DNA of 55,731 nt, the filler included, from Trichosphaerium sp. ATCC 40318 (Eukaryota; Protista; Tubulinea), in the NCBI GenBank assembly GCA_038496445.1. It is 3 parts of 3 records of this genome, joined end to end, with 100 filler letters (N's around TTAATTAATTAA, not from the genome) between each part and the next. Parts side by side here need not be neighbours in the genome. Positions count along the whole stretch, not along the records: positions 1 to 13,562 come from JALMLS010000230.1; 2 more parts are not named here. One strand, written 5' to 3'. The position numbers and the translations under genes are program-made. How positions within the stretch are numbered: the first letter of the stretch is position 1; each line of letters opens with the position of its first letter. This document shows positions 1 through 13,562 of this stretch, piece by piece. A model generated the notes under the pieces. The model did no database searches. It saw only the letters and a program-made list of their open reading frames with translations, and had not been told where the DNA came from.

Positions 1-1459
1 TATCTTGGTTACTACCAGCGTGTTGGCTCATTGCTACTTTTGTCGGAGCTATGGTGTACCTCGCTTGCATGCAGTTTTATATGGGCGCAGCCTCCAAAGG
101 TACAAATCAATGTAATGGTTAATTCTGTTAGCTAAGTTGTATTGTAGTCAAGCCAAATGCGATTGGTTATATCAATGGCTTCTAACAGGATCTTTGGATC
201 TTAGTGGTATTATATTTTGGTTGTTTCTCGTAGTGTATGACTGGGGTGTATCGCTAAGGTACATTTCTTCCTTTTTTCTTGTTCACGAACTAATTCCTGA
301 TTTCTCTTTCTTAGATGGGTCTTCTTAGGATATGGTGTACTTGTGTTCATATTCGTTATACCATCTGCTTTCTTCATGGACCCTGATTATTCTTTACTGA
401 CGCAAGAAAACCAACCAGTTGTGGGGGAAAAACCACCATCGCTCTTGGAGATTTCGAAAGATGCTCCAAATCCCATCGTTATTGCGTCATGTATGTTCAA
501 TCTGATTAAAGCGTCTCAATTAAGACTTTCATATGAAGGCGTATGCGATATGTACAGCACCTTGGGTTACTTCTACTTGAGTACTGTACCTGATCAGATT
601 AATTGGGTGACAAATATTGGAACAGTTGATGCTGATGACGATACTGCTCATGATCTCACGTTAGGGTTTTCTATATTACTACCAGCACTTTCATTATTTG
701 CTCCCCTGGCAGGATTTATGTTTCATACAAAAGTGGAAGGTACACGTGAACTTACTTATTCGTTTGCATAATCATTTTTTTAAAACTAAATGATGTTTCT
801 TAGGTTTGCGGACTGCTTGGAGAGGTGCCTTACTATCTCTTATCCTTGGGCTCATGTGGGTTGCTTTTTCTATGATTAAGGTAGAGATCGTATATTTTCT
901 GATTTACTTTTGAAGCTAATATCTACGGGGTAGATTGCAAACTTACAATACGCCACTTTTATATTTTTTATTTTATGGAGAATGTCAACTTTTCTTTTCT
1001 CTAATCAGCTGATTCAACAATACTGTCCAAGAAACTTTAGTAGAATCGTAGTTGTGTACGCATCAAATACTAATTTAAATCAAAACCAAACACCATATAA
1101 TTGACACGTGATAAACAAAAGACGTTCAAATATAGTTTTTTATCATGTGATACTGACAAGTTATTTTGACTGTAGAGGATACTGTATCAGTGGTATTGGT
1201 ACATTCTTGACACCTGTTCTCGATACACTTGTGTCACCTAATAACTATTATTATTGGGTAAACTTTGGCATGTTTGCTGTATCTGTAGTTCCTACAGCAA
1301 TTCTACTTGGATTCGCATTTGCACTTCGCGATGCAAACTATAACGGCTTGATACTAACACGTCCTTCACACCCGTAAGTTTGACACTTTAAATCACTCTT
1401 ACTTATATTTTTATATTAGTGTTAATGAAGAAGATGTGGTGTCTTTACAACCATCATAA
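1..1459 (+). CDS. Multi-exon MFS-type membrane transporter (SLC43/FMP42-like), 5' part outside window
   Basis: Successive hydrophobic exons bounded by GT..AG introns, including IANLQYATFIFFILWRMSTF; last exon VNEEDVVSLQPS* ends at 1459. Family is from recalled motifs. Confidence 0.55.
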
Positions 1460-1853
1460 TAAACAAAGTTATAGCTAACTGCAGCTTACCAATTTTTTTG
1501 TATATCAGGTAGACTTTTAACTTTATTTTGTAAAGACACCATGTTTCGCAGTCACAACCAATCCGAACTTTGCAATTCTACCATGGTAGTTATCTTGCCA
1601 AATTCTTTTAGTGTAAAACCCCAAATAAAAAAGGCGTCATTTATATTTAGTGTACTGTTCACAACTTGTAACTTGCGCTTATTTCAAAGAAATCATGTGG
1701 TTGGTCAATATAAAACAACTCATTTGGCTATAATTTATATCCTAAAAGTGGTGTACCAGTAAGAACGTCATAAGATACAGAATAGTTTTTGTTAGGTAAT
1801 GTATTATTTATTACACATCTTCAACAGTACATAGAGAATCAATTGTTTATTGT

Positions 1854-2792
1854 TTACCTGTATCTTCTGTGGTTCCTTGTTCGTGTGAATGATGATACCC
1901 AAGTATTCCTATTTCGCTTTGCATATGATCTAGATCGGTTATTCGTGTGTCTTTTTCTTGAAGAGCTATATTTTGATCTCCTTGACGGAGAATACATTGA
2001 GCTTTGATCAAGAACATATGAGGGTGCTGGTGAAGAATGTGCAGGTAATATACAAGGAGTATAACTTGAGCTTGAAGGAGTGTACTTCGGGCTTATAGGA
2101 GTATACTTTGGGCTTGTAGGAGAATACTTTGGACTTGTAGGAGCATATATTGGGCTTGAAGGAGGATACTTTGGGCTTGTAGGAGAGTACTTTGGACTTG
2201 CAGGAGCATATATTGGGCTTGAAGGAGGATACTTTGGACTTGTAGGAGAATACTTTGGACTTGCCAGTGATATAGGAGTATACTTTGGGCTTGAAGGAGA
2301 ATACTTTGGACTTGCCAGTGATATAGGAGTATACCTTGGGCTTATAGGAGAATATGCCGTTGATGTAGGATCATATATTGGGCTTGAAGGAGGATACTTT
2401 GGACTTGTAGGAGAATACTTTGGACTTGCAGGAGCATATGCTGATAATGTAGGAGCATATCTTGGACTTGTAGGTGAATACTTTGGGCTGGTAGGAGAAT
2501 ACTTTGGACTTGCCGGTGATATAGGAGCATACCTTGGGCTTATAGTAGAATATGTTGGACAATACTCAAGGCTTGAACTACAGTAACCTGTGCTTACAGG
2601 GGCATAATTTTGGCTCGAACAATATAGAGATAGTGGCCTTTCATTGTAAGTACGTCTTTTCTTTCTACCTCTCTTCCAATGTGGTGATGGGTGTTGATTT
2701 TGGCGTCTTGGACGTGTTTTTTTTTTTGGTTTTGTACGAGATCTTGATTTGTTAGCTCTATTTCTTCGTTTACCCTGATAATTAACACCCAT
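1854..2792 (-). CDS. Intronless 312-aa protein with RNA polymerase II CTD-like heptads (YSPTSPK) between Arg/Lys-rich termini
   Basis: About 25 tandem Y-[SATP]-P-x-S-P-[KRI] heptads, several exact YSPTSPK; no Rpb1 catalytic domains in the ORF or upstream. Confidence 0.8.
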
Positions 2793-3394
2793 GGCTGTTA
2801 TTTTGATGCTATTGGTGTTTTTCGTAAAGGTTTGTGTTGTTTTTGTTATTGTGGATGCTATGCTCTCGGTGGTGTATTGTAATTATTGTTTGTTAATAAG
2901 TGTGATGTACCTTGACGAGGTATGACTATGTCAGCGCTTAACTTAATAAACAGTTCGTTTAACCTATATCTACGTACCTTACAATAAGTAGTATGTCTAC
3001 AAACAAACAATCTCCTCGGTTGGGTTTTATCAAGATTCAAGATTTTTTTTGAGTTTTTCTATTTTAAAACAAACACGTGAGCATTTTTTTTACTTGACGC
3101 CTGGTGACTGGTGCCTCATGCGCAGATTTTTTGAAGATGAGATGAAGTAATTCCATCGACTAACAATAGACTAAGTGAATGCCAAATGGCATATAATCAT
3201 TGACTTAACAAACCTCTTTCCATTGACCGTGTACCCACTGAATAGTTAACACCATCGCATCTCTTTGCTTTGTCTTGATGACTCCGGTAGTTGCTCTAGC
3301 AATACTATTACAACATGTGGCAGTACAATATGTTGTTTCTTTATTCACAATGTCAATTTCAAAGCTTAAATTTGTCCAGTCTTTTGATATTACT

Positions 3395-5552
3395 TCATGT
3401 TCTTATTTTATGTTTCCTCGGTTCAACCTCCAAAGATATGTTGTATTTTTCGTTTTCATTCATTGTAGTTCTCCATCCATTTATGGTTGATCTTAGCCAA
3501 GCCACTGATTTAAAGTTATAGCAAGGTTTTAATGTTTTGTTAAAATAACCAATAACCTCTAACAGGATGTTGTATTTTCTCATGTTGTATTGTGGAAATG
3601 GTGGACGTAAACAACCACTTTCTTGTGTAAGAACTATGTCTCGTAGATATAATCCAATGTAAGGAACTTGTGGTTGGTTATACTCACTACGCTTTCTGTA
3701 CAAAGAATGAGAAGACGAGGTCTTCAGGTAATGGGACAACGTTGCAAAACACTTATTTAAACGTACAAACAAAATTCTCGAATATCCTTGTTGCGTTCAG
3801 TTACACTCAATAAAACGCTTAAACTTTCATGTGACAACATCGTTGATATTGAAATCTACAGGCTCTTGATTAGCCACGTTTGAGAAAAAAGAAGGAAAAA
3901 AAAGAGTGCGGCTCAGAATTGGTATTTTGTTTGAAATCTTAACCTTGCTGAATGTGCCTTTTAGCCTATATACAGGTCCACTATGTAGTCCACTAATAAC
4001 ACCACAAGCATCATGAGTATTACCAATATCAACAAGTTGTTGAGCCAACTTAATAAAGTATGAAATTCGCTTTGCACGGATGTCAGCAGTCTTTCCCTGC
4101 AACACTTGTTCAGTTACATATCCAGCCACCTAAAAGCGTTGGTCAGAAAGCCATTCATACTTTTAATATCGTACTAATGTGAAATGATCTCTAAGTGCCT
4201 GTACTGATCTATGAAAAGGGTATGGGCAAAAGAATAGAGCTATCATCAAACATTTCCTCATTCTTGAAACAATGTGTAAATGAATGTGTAAACAAGCAAA
4301 AAAGAGAACCATACAATTCATGTGTCTTTAGTGTCATCTCTATTGCAAGTTCTCTTTGTGGTATATCCCACAATACATCTGTTTTCTTGATACATTTCTT
4401 TGGTATCAACAGATTTGATGCCAATGGCTCAGTGTAACAGAATCCTCGGAAACAGAACTCTGATTTTGTTTTCTACAAAAACATATCTGTAAGCACATGT
4501 GATTTTACCTGTTTGTTTTACATTGGTTTGAAGCATCACTTGTATTCTATCTGAGAACGCTTTTGATAGTACTTTGTAGTGATCTGGCGATAACACTTTA
4601 AGAGAAGCTTCAAATTGTAAAGAGAAAGTATTCGATGAAGTTGCAATGTCATCACAAAGTGGCACGTGTGATAAAACATATCCCAAAAACTGGATTACCC
4701 TTGTTTTATTTTGATTAGTTACACCAAATGTGTTATGAAGGCAAATGAGGAAAGGGTGACGGTGTGTACCTATGAGCATCAACACTTTTTGAATTCGCCT
4801 TGTATATTGACATGAGTTTAGGAATAATATGAGAAACAAACTCATGTTTGTAACAAAGATGGCCTGCTATGAGCGCAACCAAGTCACCTAATTTGATTAA
4901 ACATTAATCACTACAATGAACATACTTGAGGTGTCATAGTTGATCGTTTTAATATTAAAACATAAGTCATCAACAAGTTCTGTATGAGCAAACTTTGTGT
5001 TGTGACAAATCAGTTTGACAAATCCATCAACTGTACACACGTGTATAGATTCTATGCTGAAAAGACAACCATAGCTTGGTTTCTCAGTTTGTTCCAACTC
5101 TTTGCATAGCCTGATGTCCTTGTGTATAAACTAAAGCAAAAATCACTTAGTAAAAAAAAGTCGTTATTGAGCACTGTGATGCAAAAATTAGGTTCACTGT
5201 CACGTGGTTTGTATACAAGTAGTTTGTTAACGTACGGTGTCAATTTGAGGATGTTTCTGTAGCAATTCAACGGTAGGTTTGACAAGTATGCGTACAAGCG
5301 CAACCCATGTACCACGACACAGTTCAAGCATTTTAGATGCTTGGTAGACGTTAGTATTCCATAAATAATTTGTAGTCTTACCATCTTCATATTTGATGCC
5401 GTTTTTCGCTAACAGCGGTTTAATCCATGTTGTAGGTAACGCAAAAACAGCACACCAATTTTTTGAAACCTAAATACCGTTAGTCACGTGCGCGTGGTGA
5501 CTGTACATACTGTAGAGCAGTTGTGGCATAGTTGTTGAGGAGAAAGGTTCAT
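3395..5552 (-). CDS. Multi-exon RasGEF (CDC25-type) domain protein
   Basis: RAKRISYFIKLAQQL, GVISGLHSGPVYRLKGTF, PQVPYIGLYLRDIVLTQE and SLEVEPR match the CDC25 domain; both ends approximate. Confidence 0.8.
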
Positions 5553-5816
5553 AAATATGTGTTGGAGTATCTCATTGGGTAGATCATTTACCGAAGTCAT
5601 CAAAAACAAAGCAAAGAGATGTGACGGGTTCAATTGAACAGATTTTTATAGCTTTTTTATTCATTGAAAACATGTTTTGCACAAAAGCAGTTGTATCTTT
5701 CTGTGTTGGTTTATAGGAACTACCAACGTAATATGGTCGGTGTTTATTCGCGTGCTATAGCACGTTGTGAGAAAAGCTAATACATGCTACTTGTCGTTGA
5801 TCAACAGAAAGGGAAA

Positions 5817-6896
5817 CTATTTTTTTCTATTTGGTAAGTAAGTTCCAATAATTATAGCATGGCTTGTTTCATATGGTTCCAGAGTAATTTGTTCCCTAGG
5901 CCTAAGTGCTGTAAGACTATAAGTTGTCTAACAGCGTTTTTAGTTTATGCTTGTGTGCAACAAAGTAAATTTAACAACAGAATTGGTGAACTTTTCTGCT
6001 CTTAGATCTTTTACAGTTTGTGAGTAAAACTGCTCAGGTAGCATTGCATCACCAAAGATTTGCCGCTTGGCCTGTGGTAGCGAGTGAGTTAAATAACCTT
6101 CAGCTACAGCAACAAAAAGAAGGGATCATATGTACATGGACAGAAATAACAAAGCCTCCTCCATCTGAAAGGAAATATTGCGCATTCACACCAATAATAT
6201 GTGCTTGGTCACGTGTAGAAATATCAGAGAAGATGCAATCAACTGTATTGACCAGCATTCTAAGTTTGTTATTGAGTAGAAAGCAGTTGTCTTTTATCTA
6301 CTCTACCTGTATTTATGTGGATAACGGGCATCCTCAATGATTGGAACAATATTTGGTCTGTTTTTGGCAACTTCAACCAACTCACGACCACGTTTGTGAG
6401 AAACTTCTACAGCATAAACAACACCCTTCTAAAATGTATGTAACTAAGTCTGGTATTTGTTACAAAGCAACATACCTCTCCAACAATGTCAGACACATGA
6501 GAGACTGTAATACCAGATGCAGCACCCAAGTAGAGCACTCTTGATCCAGGCGCCATGTGAATATTAATAACACCGCTGATGATTGCTGCTGCAAGCTTTG
6601 ATTGGAATGGATTCCATGTTCTGTATTCTTTTTTCTCATTAGGTTCCTATTAAGAGTTAAGACTGTGTTCCTGGCTTCTGTTGGCTATTAATTGTTTTGA
6701 ATCGTCGTACTTGGCTTTTCACTGCTACTGTCACCTCGTCATACACAGAACGGCCTGGTGTTAGAGAACAGGTAAACATACGCTTTTCGCTGTTTATTTC
6801 GCCCAAAAATACTCCTAAAAAACGTTGATGTGGTTCAATTATAAGTTTGTATTCATCATTACGAATATCACTACGCCTACTACCGAATGGAAACAT
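5817..6896 (-). CDS. FBL: Divergent fibrillarin-like 2'-O-methyltransferase without GAR domain, multi-exon
   Basis: Spliced translation gives [62 protein letters not shown] and [20 protein letters not shown], collinear with fibrillarin/Nop1. Confidence 0.9.
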
Positions 6897-7043
6897 AACA
6901 AATGTGTAGAAAAATAAAGACTATTTGTGTTAGTCATTTTTCTTATTGGTTTGTCTAAAATAAAAACTGATTTGCATCACGTGTTAATCAAAAAAAAAAC
7001 TGTTGTGGTAAATGAAATATATTTGAAGTACTGCTTAATGAGT

Positions 7044-8385
7044 TTACATGCTCCATGAGACAAAGAGAAGGACCAAAGAGAAGGATACAAGGTTAGTGCT
7101 GGAAGAAGTATCTTCCGTTGGTGCAACAGTCACTTCACTCGGCATCACGGATCCATCACTAGGCGCATCAGGTGCCATTGGAGATTCTGTTGTTGCTGAA
7201 GGCGATTCTGTAGTTGCTGAAGGCGCTTCTGTTGTTGGTGAAGGCGCTTCTGTTGTTGGTGAAGCTTCTGATGGCATACTCGGTTCTGCTGTTGGTATGT
7301 CTGTAGGATTGCATCCAGACTCTGATGGATCACAGTAAAGATTAGGCATCAAAGTACCGTGCCATTTCGCTCTCAACTCAGCAACACTTTGGCTGTCGGC
7401 TTTGTTAGTATCCCAGAAGCTGTATCCAAACTTTTCTCTATGAAAGAATGGACCAACATGGCCACCCCAGAATCCTTCATCAGCCAAAGTATTACACAGA
7501 CCACGAGACCACTTGAGCGACCAAGGAATTCCTGATTTTGGACCAGGAAAAATGCCCTCAGCTCCACCACCTGCGGCAACACAAGGAGAATGACCATCAG
7601 GTAAGTAAGGCTTTTGATCGTCAGGATCAGAAGGTACGAAACTTGCTCCACAGTGAGAGTTTGTACTGCTTTGACAAGGACCGTAAACTTCTGCAGAATC
7701 TGCTGTGGCAGGGTATTTTGTGTCCCACATTGTAGTGAACTTGCGTTCAGCACCCCACTGAGCACGAGCAAACATGCAGTAATCCTTCTTTACTTGTCTG
7801 TCAGCACTCGTATAGCCTAAAAAAAAGATCACTTTTGTTTTTTCTACTTCCTAAGCTGCATGTAGAAAACACGTGACATGCCAAAGTGGCTTTTTTTCAC
7901 AAATTAATTGGTATACTCTTTTTTTCGTACCTACTAGCGCTCGCACGTGATTTAACGCTATACGATGCCACTCATCGACTTCTGCTTTCGTTGGATTCAA
8001 GACGTCGGCAAAAGGATTGTGCTTATAGAATACCTCGCGTATGCCTCTAATACGATCTACTTGAGGGCAAATAGCCTTCCAGAAGTCCTCTCTGTTCATT
8101 TTGGAAGGATTGTAAATAGTTCCATCCCATTTAGAGTCTTCCCATGCTTGAGCGTTAATCCAAAGTACGCCATCAGGATCATGTGATACTTGGTTGCTGG
8201 AAATCGCTTTTGTTTCGAATGACGACCAATCAGCTGGATCTGGAGTATACTGCTGTAGAAATACTGTTGTCACACATAAGCATAGAATCAAGCAAGTGAC
8301 TAGTTGTGGTAAGTTGTTTGATCCAAAATAATAACAAACCAAGCGCAAATATTAAAAATACAAAAACAACAAGAAAAAATAACAT
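7044..8385 (-). CDS. Secreted, probably GPI-anchored protein: Trp/Cys-rich globular domain plus S/T/P/E-rich stalk
   Basis: Signal peptide MLFFLVVFVFLIFAL; exons in ORFs 7851-8348 and 7044-7832; PTTEAPS repeats; hydrophobic C-terminus. Confidence 0.7.
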
Positions 8386-8929
8386 AAATGACACGTGACA
8401 AAAGTATAAAGTTTTTTGGAAATTATTTAAGACTCGTAAAGTTGAATTGTTTTGGATTGCCAAGGAGACTCTTGTACTTATTCTAACGTGTACCTGACAC
8501 AAAGTTTTGCATCTTCAGTTGTTACGATGTTGAGAAAAATGATCTTATTATGAACGTAATTCACACAATTAATCAAGAGGCAACATTTTGTCGTTTTGAA
8601 AGGCAAATTACAGACTGTTATCACGTGATTACTCAAAGTAAACTTAATATGACTTGTGTGGTATCTTTTGTACCGAATTAGCTTAAAAATGGTGGCAAAA
8701 ATAATGGTACAAAGCATAATTAGCTTGCACTTTAGAAAATGGCAAAAAATGTTCTCCTTCTTTGGCAGTGTGCTTAATCCACGCCAAAAGAGGTACACGC
8801 AACTAAATACTGTTCGATTAGCGCTAACGTTTGTATTGAACAAGACTAATGTCATACGGTACAAAAAGCCATAAATAGAAAAATATCTTCATAGCATGAT
8901 TCAAACGAGGTAAACTAGTTAAAAACAGT

Positions 8930-9845
8930 ATGGCACGCCCAGTTATAATAGATACAGACCCAGGAGGTACGCTAATACCGTTTTTGATATTAATTAACAT
9001 AAAACCCAGTCGATGACGCTCTAGCTATACTCCTAGCGCTTGTTTCGCCTAAAATTAAGGTTCTCGGGATTACAATCGTACCTGGGAACCTAAGTGACGT
9101 TAAACAAATGGCGGAAAACGCGTTCAAGATCCTAGAAGTAGCAAACAGGCGCCACGTGCCGGTACGGACAAAAAATCAGTCTTTTTTTTTGTATTTGCTC
9201 ATTGCAAAACAGGTCTTTGTTGGCGCGTTGAAGCCTTTAGCACGTGCTCATAGACCCAGTGATTATTGTGTATATGGCTATGATGGTATGGGTGACACAG
9301 GTACACAAACAAAGAAATACGCTGGTTTGTTTACTGGTTTTTTCTAGACTATCCTAATACGGATCGTAAAGTTTCAGATAAATTACGTCCATGAAGTCTA
9401 CACAATGGGAGGTGCTGTAGGTTATCCTGGTAATAGAACAACTGCAGCTGAATTTAACAGTAAGTACAACAATGAACGTTCAAAGCTAATAATTGTGGCA
9501 GTATCGATTGATCCTGAAGCAGCCAAAATATTTTTTAATGCAGGTAATGCTTTTTACTAAAGTGAGAAGCTTTGAGATCTCTGATTTTAATCTTACCTAC
9601 AAGTACATGAAACTTAAAGTAAGGTTGACGATCCTATGTCTACAATGACAATACTAGAACCTACAATGTTCACATCACGTGAGATATGCGTTGATGTTGA
9701 GACAAAAGGCGAATTGACAACAGGTGCAACTATTGGTGATTTTCAGAATGTTTGGAACCGTTCTGCGAATGTTATACTTTACACCAGCGTTGATGAAACA
9801 AGGCTAAAAGATGCAATGTGTAACGTATTAAGACATGCAAAGTAA
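8930..9845 (+). pseudogene. Inosine-uridine preferring nucleoside hydrolase, internally deleted
   Basis: IIDTDPG/VDDALAI, GITIVPGN, GYDGMGD, MGG..GNRTTAAEFN, DPEAAK, VDVETKGELTTGAT present; the GPLTN and GLDVT segments are missing and the frame breaks near 9385. Confidence 0.7.
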
Positions 9846-9953
9846 AGTATACAACACAATCTAAAGCCTATGTTTCACATAGTACTTAACAAGATCTGTT
9901 GCTGTTTATTTAAACTCATTTGTTTTGTTTACTGTTTGAAGAAGAATGAAACT

Positions 9954-10747
9954 TTATTGTGTAATTTTTACATCAAGTTCACCAATAGGTTTACTCCAAT
10001 CGAAATCTGGTGATCGAGCTTCAACTGAAGACCGTTGATTCATCAATAATCCTAATCAAAAATAAGTTTGATTTAACACATCATTGCATTGCATGGTTGG
10101 CTTTAATGGATTAACTATTTTCATACCATATGTGATATCCATCTTAGTCTCTTTGGTAATTGGAAGAGGACCAATAGAATCAACTGTGAAGGCGAATAAA
10201 GCTCTTTTCAGAAAGTTAGCGTAAGTCTTAGTTTTATTGTTCAACGTGTTTGTAGGCATACCTCAGGTGAGAACGGCTCAAGAGAACAGTGTAAGTATGG
10301 CCGACAGTCAATTCTGAACCGACATTGCAGTTTGCTACACCATGCTTGGTGGCATTTTGAGCAGAAATGTCAGTCAATGCAACTTTTCCCATATCACTTA
10401 ACAAATTGATGTTAAAATACTTTCATAGGTGAAGAAAAAAGAGTACCAAACGCGATACATATCATCTCCTGCTAAACTGTAGGTCATTGATGCGGTTTCA
10501 GCCTTACAACCTCCATTGAACAAGATGTAAGGCTAAAAAAACCAATAAACACGTGGTTCGTAAATATCTCAAGTATCGCACGTGCCTCACGCAATTCGCG
10601 GTCAACAAAAAGACCAGATGTGGCGTATGAGCCACCACAGCTGTATGAAGCTTCAAAACTGAACTTTGTAGGTACACGTAATGGTGGTAGCGATTGAGAA
10701 GCGACGAAAGCGATGCACGCTAGTAGTAAGAGAAGTTGTGTTGCCAT
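9954..10747 (-). CDS. Multi-exon secreted protein, unknown function
   Basis: Signal peptide MATQLLLLLACIAFVASQ, GT-AG bounded exons, last exon ..KPIGELDVKITQ*. Confidence 0.6.
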
Positions 10748-11214
10748 TGTAGTTTGAGGATAATTACCAAGAGCACACTTAAGAACACGTCTAAATCAGG
10801 AAAGTAATTTCCCCGTGAGAAGAGTTTTTTTTTTTGTTTTTTTTTTCGATTATTGTTCTGCGTTACAATAACAATACTATTGTAGGGTAATACGGTCCGC
10901 CTATTTATTCCTTTGCGGTCCCATACAGATTTACATATCTGATAGGAACACTTACAGAGTAAAAGTTTTGTTGTTGTAGCTTGTGAGATACAAAATTTCT
11001 ACTCCATGTTTGACTCGTCATATTTCCAATTTTGTTTTTGATAATTTTGTATTGATTTTTGTTTGTTATTTTCCTGTTTTTGTAAGACTTCGATATGGTT
11101 GTGGGTTTGGGTGGGTGCTATCGTAGGATTGCGGAAACGTTGTTACGTTCAAGGAACAAAAGGGCTTAAGAATACTTAGTATTGTTAATGTCCTTGAACA
11201 ATAACTACAATTAG

Positions 11215-11893
11215 TTAAGTACCACTACTTATACACATAATAACCCTAATAGTGACGCATTTGAATATGGGTTTATACTTCAACTTGTAAAGGATTGGAC
11301 CTTGAGCTGTTTATAGTTGTAGTTTATCAATCAATAATCAGTATCAATGTCAATTTGGTTAAGCATGTGTACTTAAAACAAAATAGCCCGTATCAATAAA
11401 ACTCAGTGATTGATTATGCATTGTTGGTTAAGTATGTAAACTTAAAATGAAATAGCCCGTATCAAAGTACAACTTTTCAATCACCTTTTGAATGTGATTA
11501 AGGATGCGTACTTAAAACGTAATGACTCTAATGGTGGCAAATACAATGTTGTTGGCTAGGGTTTTAAACAAATATCTAATTTGTAGTTGTAAACGCTTTT
11601 GGAATCAATCTGGTAACTGTGTTAAGTAGGTGAACTTAGATCGTAATAGCAACAATCAATCTAGTGAATTGTATTAAGCAAGGAAACTTAGTGTACAATG
11701 GCAACAATCAATCTTAGAGTAATGGCTATTCACTAGTGCTAAGTAATACAACTTAATGCAACATAGCACCAATCAATCTAAATAAAGCACATTAAGGATG
11801 TGTGCTTAATGCAAAATGGCAACAATCAATCTAGTTTAATGGCTATTCACTAATGCTGCTAAGTAATACAACTTAATGCAAGATAGCAACAAT
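11215..11893. repeat. Array of ~9-10 degenerate units containing the palindrome YTAAG-N8-CTTAR plus an ATRGC/AACAATCAATCT tail
   Basis: Copies start at 11215, 11359, 11428, 11498, 11622, 11674, 11739, 11792 and 11859, with a weaker one near 11288. Confidence 0.85.
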
Positions 11894-12719
11894 AGTACAT
11901 GCAAGCATGAACAATGTATCATTCTTGAAATTGTTCCTGAAACTCTAAGAAACTCAAAGAATCACTGAAATCGTGAACTCTCTGAGTTGATTATAATCGG
12001 TGTCGGTTTGTTAAAGATGAGTGGGGTGATTGAGTATGGTTGGTATGGTTGTTCGTACCTGTTGTAAAATGAGAGTTACAATACAGTAAGCACTTGTATC
12101 TTTATATTGAACTTTTTAATGAAATCGCAAACATAATTTGGATTATAGCTGTTGATACAAAGCTTCTGGTGTGTATTCATAACATACATAGACAAGAAAT
12201 AGGCAAATGTTTTGAACGAAAGGTTAGCCTACGAAATTATGTTGGACGAATACAATGAGTTCTAGAAGTCGAAAAAATGATGCTATTTCTGTCACACCAC
12301 TATAGCAAACCTGAGGTGGTTATACATACGTTGTTCCGTGATACACCACGGTTTCTTATGTGAATATCTTTTTATTATATATGTCGTTGTTTGTGTGTAG
12401 CGATAAACACCACAATGGCTGTGTTAAATTCTGTACCTGCAATTTTGAATTAAGGATAAGGATGCTCATGAAGCTAGTAAGTTCTGTTACGTTATTGAAG
12501 AAATAGCTGTGATATGTTGTGTTTTCTTTTCACGCTTGCTATGGACAAAAGAACAATTTTACGTAAGTCACGTGACTTTTTTAGGTGAAAACTTAACAGT
12601 GAATTGTTTCTATACTTCAACTACGCCAAACAAAGATAGACCGGTGGTACTAGTTTGCTCCCATAGATGTACACATTATCTGTTTTATTGTTTTGTTTGG
12701 AGGCTTTTACGCTTATAAC

Positions 12720-13562
12720 ATGTACGTACTCTTGAATTCAACGTAATGAAACGGTTTTTTTGAACCAAGTGAAAAATCTTTTCAACTGTTCCTTTAAATT
12801 AATGAAAGGCAATCCTGCGGGTATGGTGGCGCACTTTTCAAGCGATGGGACCCTAGGTGAGCCAGGAAACGATGGTATACGAGTGTTCGGAGAAGACTTT
12901 AGTAGCCACGATGTTATTTCAGTAGGCGCTTGGGTGAACTTTGACAAGTACTAAATACGGCTGTTGTTCGAGCTTGACCTAATTTGTGTTTTTAGGGATT
13001 GTGATACGGATGGAGAAAAGCTTTATGGTATTTTCTCAACAAAACCTGCAGGAAGAAGCATTACGTATGGATTTCTTCTTTATGTTGGTCTTTACGAATC
13101 GGTCACATGCCCTCGCCGTCAACTCACATTCGAGACATTCTCCGATGACTACATAAAATACCCAAACACCTTCGATCCAAGTATTCACCCTCAGGTGCTT
13201 GAACAGTGGGTTACGTAACATTAGAACTAAGATTTCTGAAGCTTATAATTGTACAGGTTTATGTTTACTTTTCACGTGACTTGACAACAAAAGAGATAAC
13301 GATAAAGACTGTAGCAAATAATACAGTTCTTAAAAGTGCACATACTTTAATTCCTAGTTTACAACCATCAAGAAGAGTACATATTCTTTGCTAACTAATT
13401 CTTGTGATTGTTAACACGTTCTTTAATAGGGTTTCTTTACAATTGGCTGCTTGTCTTCGTTCGACCATAGTGTAGAATTTGGATTCTCAGTGCGTTGCAA
13501 CAAGGAATATGTTAAACATTTGAGTTCACATCTTTTAGGGTGACATTGATAACATGGGTATA
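12720..13562 (+). CDS. LamG/concanavalin-A-like domain protein, cut by contig end
   Basis: ISVGAWVNF, FTIG and GDIDNMGI follow the LamG pattern; spliced; start approximate. Confidence 0.5.

Follow-up and report, generated by a model that had tools for sequence, protein, structure and literature searches.

A free-standing RNA polymerase II CTD-like heptad array between basic tails in a single ORF of the Trichosphaerium sp. ATCC 40318 assembly

The CTD of RPB1, with its tandem Tyr1-Ser2-Pro3-Thr4-Ser5-Pro6-x7 heptads (PF05001), is usually studied as an appendage of RNA polymerase II (Pol II). Metazoan RPB1 proteins have long CTDs, and their C-terminal end is a short acidic tip. Action on CTD phosphorylation in trans is known from PIE-1 of Caenorhabditis elegans, Pgc of Drosophila and Pem-1 of an ascidian, small proteins which are each lineage-specific and unrelated to the others and which target the CTD kinase P-TEFb and block Ser2 phosphorylation (bioRxiv 10.1101/2021.07.12.452040; PMC2748068, where Zhang et al. 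2003, ‘CTD analogs and PIE-1’, is cited). PIE-1 combines CCCH zinc fingers with one or two CTD-like heptads, including the motif YAPMAPT. Mimicry of the CTD is also found in yeast Sen1 and Trf4, where a CTD-like peptide (the Nrd1-interaction motif) competes for a CTD-interaction domain (PMC7110113; PMC4186968). A third comparison is offered by hydrozoans and sea urchins, whose sperm-specific H2B and H1 have SPK(K/R) repeats by which sperm chromatin is stabilized, in nucleic-acid-binding segments under the control of phosphorylation (PMC9903204).

In addition, free-standing CTD-like proteins are already precedented, as predicted proteins, in the sequence databases. The PF05001-repeat ORFs recorded there outside RPB1, all of them uncharacterised, have 8–20 CTD-type heptads, several with Lys7, and are either free-standing (Ostrea edulis LOC125662825 (P0048), P0022/P0028 and P0019/P0033) or fused to BTB (P0068/P0089) or RING (P0093/P0101). 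The Ostrea edulis example is an isolated gene for a protein of 228 aa, with one inferred intron and a span of 850 bp in a chromosome-level assembly. These database proteins look like independent inventions and not like one family, and their likeness to the ORF described in the present paper is limited to the heptads, none of them having two basic tails.

The window, i.e. the whole stretch of DNA that was analysed, has a length of 55,731 nucleotides, and the ORF lies in its first piece (positions 1–13562). The ORF starts with an ATG at 2792 in a Kozak-like context (gccATGg) and stops with a TAA at 1856-1854, and Ser, Pro, Thr, Tyr, Lys and Arg make up 75% of its residues. The first-pass annotation had set its limits correctly at 1854–2792, the coding strand being the minus strand, and had called the frame intronless; the array and tails lie within a single continuous ORF. 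Only one of the six frames stays open across the array and both tails; an antisense ORF (2080–2586) is also open, but is restricted to the array. The probability that both non-repeat tails are open by chance is approximately 1e-3 to 3.5e-4, and the ORF with its array and two tails is more than a chance product. The start, the stop and the candidate poly(A) signals listed in Table 1 plausibly give it a gene-like arrangement, and the 312-codon frame has the look of a genuine gene, though an orphan. A Pfam scan of the ORF found no domain besides PF05001, and apart from the repeat itself there is no break in composition at the borders of the ORF. No Rfam family was found across the whole 1–13562 piece, and the exact 312-aa protein has no database record.

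Table 1 Positions of the CTD-like ORF, its parts and its surroundings, counted along the window
Feature	Position	Strand	Details
Complete ORF	1854..2792	minus	312 aa + stop; 35.1 kDa
N-terminal basic tail	2625..2792	minus	residues 1-56; NLS-like KKTR, KRGR, KKRR
N-terminal-edge degenerate heptads	2502..2624	minus	residues 57-97; match to repeat consensus climbs from 13/21 to 19/21, in register
Core heptad array	2064..2501	minus	residues 98-243
C-terminal-edge degenerate heptads	1983..2063	minus	residues 244-270
C-terminal basic Arg/Ser-rich tail	1857..1982	minus	residues 271-312
Two AATAAA hexamers, candidate poly(A) signals	1851-1846 and 1812-1807	minus	3 and 42 nt past stop; sequence only
Intergenic/5' region	2793..3394	minus	assigned from sequence only
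RasGEF (PF00617), last two exons	4129-3827 and 3772-3395	minus	profile positions 50-112 and 116-165 of 181; stop TGA 3397-3395

The ORF matched PF05001 (RNA_pol_Rpb1_R) in eight stretches with E=1.7e-13 and 50.5 bits, the gathering cut-off of this family being 20.3 bits, and the consensus of the array unit, TATTCTCCTACAAGCCCAAAG, reads YSPTSPK. With phmmer, the best PDB match of the protein was to residues 1778–1926 of mammalian RPB1, the Lys7-rich distal CTD (330 bits), the score for yeast being 122 bits. Judged by these profile and structure-database matches, the array is truly CTD-type, as the first-pass annotation had proposed, and of the Lys7 kind of the distal metazoan CTD. The figure of about 25 in-register heptads given at that time holds for the number of units, as the Tyr spacing is exactly seven residues in 21 units and ten in three (YxPISxASPK), with a few irregular units at the edges, but not for the register: because three 3-residue insertions disrupt it, the longest in-register runs are of eight and nine heptads. 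Exact YSPTSP[KR] occurs in six units, Y.P.SP[KR] in 12 and Y.P..P in 16, and the ORF has 36 [ST]P sites in all. Ser2 is present in 10/30 units, its place being taken elsewhere by Ala, Thr, Pro or Cys, and Ser5-Pro6 is retained by nearly all units.

The array thus shares with the RPB1 CTD its tandem heptads, the gathering of variation at positions 2, 4 and 7 and intrinsic disorder, the last of these predicted: the AlphaFold model has a mean pLDDT of 45 without fold or secondary structure, and the whole 312-aa protein is predicted to be disordered. It departs from the RPB1 CTD in its lack of an attached polymerase core, its disrupted register, its sparse Ser2, the near-uniform codons of a young or homogenised array and its very basic flanks, where RPB1 has a linker and an acidic tip. 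The ORF can be likened to PIE-1, Pgc and Pem-1 as candidates for trans action on the CTD machinery, although it has no sequence relationship with them. In six of its units the heptad opens with YAP and in three with YPP, and these, like the YAPMAPT of PIE-1, are non-phosphorylatable at position 2, but, unlike YAPMAPT, nearly all of them retain Ser5. It also differs from PIE-1 in having approximately 25 heptads, mostly keeping Ser5-Pro6, and no folded domain; neither Pfam nor the AlphaFold model gave tandem CCCH zinc fingers. With Sen1 and Trf4 it has in common a CTD-like sequence in a non-polymerase protein, whereas the mimics in those two are single short motifs within large enzymes and not a free-standing array. 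The sperm H1/H2B tails resemble it in their Ser-Pro-basic turns, repeated within a very basic, disordered segment; in contrast, the ORF has no SP[KR][KR], its heptad has an invariant Tyr and a second Pro, and no histone fold or winged-helix globular domain was found in it by Pfam or in the AlphaFold model.

Both tails are very basic and NLS-like, as had been described in the first-pass annotation, with 22 Lys/Arg in residues 1–60 and 16 in the final 50, K-K/R-x-K/R motifs at residues 24, 40, 44 and 292, and nine RS/SR dipeptides. The protein as a whole has a net charge of +50 and a pI of 10.5, a charge which differs from that of any real CTD and could govern the behaviour of the protein. We rejected the possibility that the tails are the repeat unit read in another frame, as their match to the 21-nt unit was no better than that of shuffled sequence. 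The first-pass annotation had suggested a search for orthologs in relatives; no orthologue or paralogue sharing the tails was found among 5.8 billion clusters. The top matches in a whole-protein word search were true RPB1 C-terminal fragments, and both basic tails were present in 0/120 of the matches listed. A word search with the N-tail (residues 1–96) gave no match, and a HMMER search of 1.84 billion representatives with the C-tail gave two, both spurious translated repeat junk. A metagenome scan with the N-terminal 96 residues gave a single locus, which was discarded: its match covers 27 residues and runs antisense to an ORF without relation to it, on a seemingly bacterial or phage contig. 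Viral contigs held no homologue, and the ESM Atlas, with RPB1 families left out, gave no usable match. The tails appear to be without known relatives among the collections searched, which seem to include no close relatives of this genome and do not include the genome itself, and the gene may be lineage-restricted, a suggestion which is part of the reading set out below and equally tentative.

The same piece of DNA gave no sign of RPB1 itself, as five RPB1 C-terminal fragments produced no HSP to RPB1 core sequence in 1–13562 by tblastn, and the catalytic core (Pfam RNA_pol_Rpb1_1 to _7) was not found contiguous upstream of the array, where the neighbour is a RasGEF gene. The ORF is not an RPB1 exon. 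The RasGEF stop lies 603 nt upstream of the ATG on the same strand, which agrees with the absence of upstream Rpb1 exons and the distance of approximately 600 bp reported in the first-pass annotation. The Atlas clusters nearest to this RasGEF are from Chordata and Mollusca. The earlier proposal that the protein complements a CTD-poor Rpb1 is unsupported, since the RasGEF neighbour looks metazoan and the RPB1 of metazoans has a long CTD. Synteny was searched through P0121, the best full-length homologue of the neighbour gene, on a Tara Oceans scaffold, and no RasGEF or CTD-like gene was found there; the best match of the neighbour gene had only 56–70% identity. The interval between RasGEF and the ORF contains a TATA-like TTTTAAAATAG near 3066-3076.

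At the DNA level, TRF reported repeat periods of 21, 42, 51 and 63 nt. Super-units of the core array are identical at 60/63 (63-nt) and 49/51 (51-nt) positions, i.e. 95–96%, and a block of approximately 250 nt is duplicated within the core array with 80% identity. Given these near-identical super-units and the near-uniform codons of the heptads (TAT TCT CCT ACA AGC/AGT CCA AAG), the array is young or homogenised by concerted evolution, and the in-register decay of the repeats toward both edges, free of stops and frameshifts, shows that it is not brand-new. The pooled pN/pS between units was 0.83. Amino-acid changes relative to the unit consensus numbered 29 at heptad positions 2/4/7 and five at 1/3/5/6, counts which are inflated by copied super-units; with distinct variants only, the numbers were 12 and 4 (binomial p=0.011). 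Synonymous changes fell mostly at the conserved heptad positions, and the substitution pattern resembles the constraint on a real CTD. Around the ORF we found no poly(A) tract, TSD, TIR, LTR or flanking direct repeats, and a processed RPB1 retrocopy or transposon origin was rejected, there being no A-run 3' of the stop and no target-site duplications.

Several other explanations have to be weighed against a gene in its own right. Repetitive CTD exons are difficult to assemble, and this is the one point we found in favour of an assembly artefact, in which the CTD exon of a real RPB1 would have been misplaced into the contig; we consider this extremely improbable, as the basic tails around the array are unique, do not come from RPB1 and share one continuous ORF with it, the borders of the ORF are smooth in composition beyond the repeat, and the C-terminal tail carries a charge of +16 where a metazoan RPB1 would end in its acidic tip. 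It is quite unlikely, although less so, that the ORF forms the last exon of some larger gene, or serves the RasGEF gene as an alternative 3' exon, with the ATG at 2792 being internal. An AG abuts the CCATGG at the ORF start, the first in-frame stop is 31 codons 5' of the ATG, a consensus donor (AAG|GTACGT) is found near 2976, RasGEF is close by on the same strand, and CTD-like arrays fused to BTB or RING are known elsewhere. Against this, the RasGEF domain is complete to position 165 of 181, and after it come a tail of 73 residues, a stop and, approximately 50 nt on, an AATAAA at 3345; the interval of approximately 600 nt has stops in the frame of the ORF and no notable ORF; and the polypyrimidine tract of the acceptor candidate is poor. 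The donor/acceptor pair would be accounted for equally by a 5'-UTR intron, and the AG before CCATGG is possibly the acceptor of such an intron or of trans-splicing.

A non-functional or proto-gene ORF is somewhat unlikely, but is the weightiest of these alternatives. A CTD-coding fragment or minisatellite would have been copied to this place, where slippage during replication or unequal exchange would have lengthened it, and the frame would be open mainly since the 21-nt unit contains no stop codon. The use of nearly a single codon for each heptad position, the near-identical super-units with their pN/pS of 0.83, the open antisense frame over the array, the lack of a homologue for either tail in the searches made and a low Atlas ‘recognition’ score (931) all agree with such an origin. 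Yet the ORF reaches 56 and 42 codons past the repeat-derived DNA, at the low chance probability given above, it has an ATG in a good context and a stop just ahead of two AATAAA hexamers, its amino-acid changes avoid Tyr1, Pro3, Ser5 and Pro6, its edges have decayed without losing the frame, and signatures of retroposition (poly(A) tract, TSD, TIR) are absent. Reproductive proteins are typically encoded by fast-evolving orphan genes with few introns, and the ORF might instead encode a basic protein that condenses chromatin or RNA (a sperm nuclear basic protein, or a nucleolar or RNP polycation), with S-P-K/R turns and tails binding nucleic acid, proline-directed phosphorylation switching that binding, and the CTD likeness being a by-product of ancestry or convergence unrelated to Pol II factors. 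The strongly positive charge, the 16 SP[KR]Y motifs, the RS/SR dipeptides of the tails, the full predicted disorder and the precedent of the SPK(K/R) repeats in sperm-specific H2B/H1 (PMC9903204) speak for it. We nevertheless regard it as unlikely, as there are no [ST]P[KR][KR] tetrapeptides, every unit keeps the Tyr1 and Pro3 that SPKK arrays do not have, both Pfam and the PDB point specifically to the RPB1 CTD, Pfam gives neither a histone fold nor a protamine-like domain, and the heptad core has just 16 Lys/Arg in 187 residues.

The reading that we tentatively favour is of a gene in its own right, restricted to its lineage, whose product would be a CTD mimic that is nuclear, disordered and tethered to nucleic acid. 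The 21-nt unit would have been amplified in situ to give the array, with homogenization still ongoing, and the Arg/Lys-rich tails would provide nuclear import and tethering to RNA or DNA. The array would then display approximately 25 Tyr1-x-Pro3-x-Ser5-Pro6-Lys7 units as a multivalent mimic of the CTD, which might use tyrosine contacts to enter the same hubs as the Pol II CTD, and might bind or sequester the kinases, phosphatases and readers of the CTD. As Ser5-Pro6 is near-universal and Ser2 is present in about one-third of the units, the protein would be a Ser5-type substrate largely refractory to Ser2 phosphorylation, and its logic would be that of the PIE-1 YAPMAPT decoy against P-TEFb, enlarged to a whole array. 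A scaffold, decoy or condensate role, as put forward in the first-pass annotation, would be an inference from these features. Doubtful, in our view, is the more far-reaching proposal of an expressed, trans-acting CTD freed from the polymerase, brought to chromatin or RNA by its basic ends and tuning or silencing transcription globally, for example in the germline or early embryo, by absorbing CDK7/CDK9, capping enzyme and CTD readers, or else by nucleating Pol II condensates or poisoning them.

If that proposal were true, the protein would be a solution of the PIE-1/Pgc/Pem-1 type made from a complete heptad array. A natural ‘CTD only’ protein with nucleic-acid-binding ends would serve as a probe of the partitioning of CTD kinases, phosphatases and readers, of the formation of tyrosine-driven CTD condensates and of the evolution of global transcription repressors, for which PIE-1, Pgc and Pem-1 represent independent origins. 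Should the ORF be unexpressed, it would make a clean case of a minisatellite that looks coding, and would counsel caution in annotation. The locus also illustrates how a functional low-complexity module may be copied to a new site and expanded there again.

The frame that the first-pass annotation had placed at 1854-2792 is a real ORF, which we now assign to the minus strand, with its ATG at 2792 (context gccATGg), its TAA at 1856-1854 and 312 codons. When the protein was cut at each tyrosine, 21 of the units were exactly seven residues long and three were ten long, the latter being a heptad plus 'SPK' in two versions (one occurring once, the other twice), with a few irregular units at both array edges. 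Because the ten-residue insertions break the register, the longest unbroken in-register runs are only eight and nine heptads. The earlier description of about 25 in-register heptads thus stands as regards the type of array, but not the unit count or the register. Exact YSPTSP[KR] is found in six units, Y.P.SP[KR] in 12 and Y.P..P in 16, and the Pfam model of the RPB1 C-terminal repeat, PF05001, matched with 50.5 bits (E=1.7e-13) against a curated cut-off of 20.3 bits. Tandem Repeats Finder returned periods of 21, 42, 51 and 63 nt. The top match in the PDB set was the distal Lys7-rich CTD of mammalian RPB1 (residues 1778-1926; 330 bits, E=1.6e-97), with the yeast CTD at ~122 bits in the same search, and the K7-type array is similar to the distal CTD of metazoans.

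The 21-nt consensus unit, TATTCTCCTACAAGCCCAAAG, encodes YSPTSPK. In a sliding comparison, identity to it was 19-21/21 in mid-array and dropped gradually towards both edges with the register kept, indicating that the edges had time to decay. Both tails matched it no better than shuffled sequence and therefore are not frame-shifted repeats, a possibility that we ruled out. The protein (35.1 kDa, pI 10.5) consists to 75% of S, P, T, Y, K and R, and contains 36 [ST]P sites and 16 SP[KR]Y motifs. Its tails are basic and NLS-like, as first described, with K-K/R-x-K/R motifs at residues 24, 40, 44 and 292 and a net charge of +50 for the whole protein. A single-sequence AlphaFold2 model, in itself weak evidence, had a mean pLDDT of 45, a pTM of 0.12 and no secondary structure, which is consistent with complete disorder.

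Features of the CTD-like ORF and of its surroundings, in positions of the window
Feature	Position	Strand	Remarks
N-terminal basic tail	2625-2792	minus	residues 1-56
Decayed heptads, N-terminal edge	2502-2624	minus	residues 57-97
Core array	2064-2501	minus	residues 98-243
Decayed heptads, C-terminal edge	1983-2063	minus	residues 244-270
C-terminal Arg/Ser-rich tail	1857-1982	minus	residues 271-312
RasGEF-domain gene, two last exons	4129-3827 and 3772-3395	minus	PF00617 positions 50-112 and 116-165 of 181
Hydrophobic ORFs	343-771 and 1108-1377	plus	membrane-protein-like stretches, no Pfam match; probably exons of a gene convergent with the CTD-like ORF at its 3' end
Fibrillarin-like ORF	6657-6896	minus	first 46 positions of Pfam Fibrillarin (E=2.9e-5, 23.8 bits, under the 27-bit cut-off); possibly a fibrillarin-like gene's first conserved exon
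Nucleoside hydrolase ORF	9636-9845	plus	PF01156 (inosine-uridine nucleoside hydrolase) positions 241-296 of 297, 34.4 bits vs 34.2 cut-off; a plus-strand gene probably ends with this exon

The CTD-like ORF is not RPB1. It shares with the RPB1 CTD an array that passes the Pfam repeat test, but lacks the attached polymerase core that defines RPB1. In a tblastn search we used five C-terminal fragments of RPB1, all of which contain core domains 5-7, and obtained no match outside the heptad array, the sole exceptions being low-complexity matches to the Pro/Thr/Ser-rich tail of another gene (7092-7358). Upstream, where Rpb1 exons had been reported absent, we found the same-strand RasGEF exons instead, and this gene ends (TGA 3397-3395, AATAAA at 3345) with its stop 603 nt before the CTD-like ATG, in agreement with the estimate of ~600 bp. 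Unrelated genes crowd the remainder of the piece. The RasGEF gene has a ~190-nt intron between its last two exons and probably extends further upstream; the Atlas clusters nearest to its exon are chordate and mollusc ones. It stands in tandem with the CTD-like ORF, and the pair could be co-transcribed if the organism trans-splices.

Misassembly of a true CTD exon into the piece is highly improbable, because the array shares a single ORF with unique, very basic, non-RPB1 flanks. One alone of the six frames is open through the array and both tails, and the antisense ORF (2080-2586, 168 aa) ends at the array borders; chance opening of the 98 non-repeat tail codons has p ~1e-3 at their own composition and 3.5e-4 at intergenic composition. 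The start is Kozak-like, and the stop is followed after 3 and 42 nt by AATAAA hexamers. An AG directly precedes CCATGG, and there is a consensus donor near 2976; the ORF start may thus adjoin a 5'-UTR intron, a trans-splice site or a coding exon further upstream. That the ORF is only the last exon of some larger gene seems to us distinctly unlikely. Relative to the consensus unit, 29 amino-acid changes fall at heptad positions 2, 4 and 7 and five at positions 1, 3, 5 and 6 (Tyr1 is invariant, and of 21 units Pro3 is retained in 19, Ser5 in 20 and Pro6 in 16), and synonymous changes lie mostly in conserved positions (10 vs 2). Because the super-units were copied, we restricted a recount to distinct variants, giving 12 vs 4 for the same two groups of positions (binomial p=0.011), whereas a Fisher test of distinct amino-acid against synonymous variants was not significant. 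The constraint pattern is that of a working CTD, the statistics being only suggestive. Essentially one codon is used at each heptad position, the super-units are near-identical (60/63 for the 63-nt and 49/51 for the 51-nt type) and pN/pS pooled over units is 0.83; the array is thus young or continually homogenised, and comparison between units cannot prove selection. There is also a block duplication of ~250 nt at 80% identity, and no signature of retroposition or of a transposon was found at the locus. Weighing these data, we regard a non-functional, recently expanded ORF as rather unlikely, albeit a serious contender.

Since the array retains precisely those CTD residues that recognition requires (Tyr1, Pro3 and Ser5-Pro6) between two polycationic, NLS-like tails that could make the protein nuclear and tether it to nucleic acid, we tentatively favour a nuclear, nucleic-acid-tethered CTD mimic. 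A nucleic-acid-condensing basic protein, modelled on the SPK(K/R) sperm histones (PMC9903204), is unlikely, given that SP[KR][KR] is wholly absent and that Tyr and Pro3 can be called invariant in the units (Pro3 with the count already stated); nor is the ORF an SPKK protein, having neither the SPKK motif nor a histone fold. As a CTD mimic, the array would receive phosphate on Ser5 from proline-directed CTD kinases, would bind Ser5-P/Tyr1 readers and would join Pol II CTD hubs by way of tyrosine contacts; that tyrosine plays a part in the phase separation of the CTD is described in PMC10519987. Most units carry Lys or Arg at position 7, and Ser2 is present in only 10/30, position 2 otherwise being A in six, T in five, P in three and C in three. 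Because this position is not phosphorylatable in most units, the array could sequester or inhibit P-TEFb-type kinases. PIE-1 carries the CTD-like motif YAPMAPT. A precedent is set by PIE-1, Pgc and Pem-1, family-less germline repressors that all block CTD Ser2 phosphorylation, PIE-1 through its CTD-like motif (bioRxiv 10.1101/2021.07.12.452040; PMC2748068, the latter citing Zhang et al. 2003, 'CTD analogs and PIE-1'). The CTD-like ORF has no zinc fingers and is not a member of the PIE-1 family.

A word-indexed search of 5.8 billion clusters gave 194 matches, the best being genuine RPB1 C-terminal fragments (e.g. the database protein P0001, 241 bits), and basic tails at both ends were found in none of the 120 matches listed. 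The N-terminal 96 residues alone had no match in this search, and the C-terminal 76 residues, run with full HMMER against 1.84 billion representatives, had only two, both translated repeat junk; metagenome contigs, viral contigs and the ESM Atlas gave nothing usable. The orthologue search proposed in the first-pass annotation therefore returned none sharing the tails in the collections covered. Because the exact protein is absent from the record and the best matches of a neighbouring gene are only 56-70% identical, these collections seem to lack both the organism and its near kin, and absence of relatives is weak evidence.

Judged by sequence, free-standing or fused CTD-like arrays recur in eukaryotic gene sets. 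LOC125662825 of Ostrea edulis (P0048; 228 aa) is an isolated gene, located on a chromosome record of 77 Mb, and since its 684 coding nt are spread over 850 bp, one intron is implied; P0022 and P0028 combine heptads with a coiled-coil-like C-terminus, and P0019 and P0033 are further array proteins. In addition, heptad arrays are fused to BTB/POZ or RING-finger domains in P0068, P0089, P0093, P0101, P0104 and P0119, e.g. in Cymbomonas tetramitiformis, suggesting that ubiquitin-ligase adaptors acquired the heptad module repeatedly. By pairwise BLASTP, only the heptads are common to our ORF and these proteins, which look like independent inventions, and a ~25-unit array between two basic tails was seen in no other match of those listed. 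We found no paper characterizing any such protein, and the ORF belongs to a loose, uncharacterized class of non-RPB1 proteins with CTD-type heptads visible in databases. If expressed, a 'CTD-only' protein would strike specialists, yet the array DNA looks young and similar orphan arrays are already in databases.

Elsewhere in the piece, the minus-strand gene at 7044-8348 has no Pfam domain. Hundreds of hypothetical proteins, the majority of them from bacterial MAGs (Myxococcales, Cyclobacteriaceae, Ekhidna, Marivirga and Oligoflexales), match its conserved part at 55-70% identity, with E-values as low as 1e-77. A bacterial homologue aligns over 8258-7308, and the extra codons at ~7832-7851 include a stop, so an intron is probable; at the C-terminus of the gene product, a Pro/Thr/Ser repeat of the TTEAPS type and a hydrophobic end are added. 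Among full-length homologues the best is P0121, which lies on a Tara Oceans eukaryote-like scaffold beside an APE2-like gene. This gene is a candidate for a bacterial-type, possibly horizontally acquired gene in a eukaryotic contig. Finally, a perfect 14-nt inverted repeat, TGGTGTCTTTACAA / TTGTAAAGACACCA (1437-1450 / 1528-1541, 77-nt spacer), lies between two convergent genes and may be due to chance.
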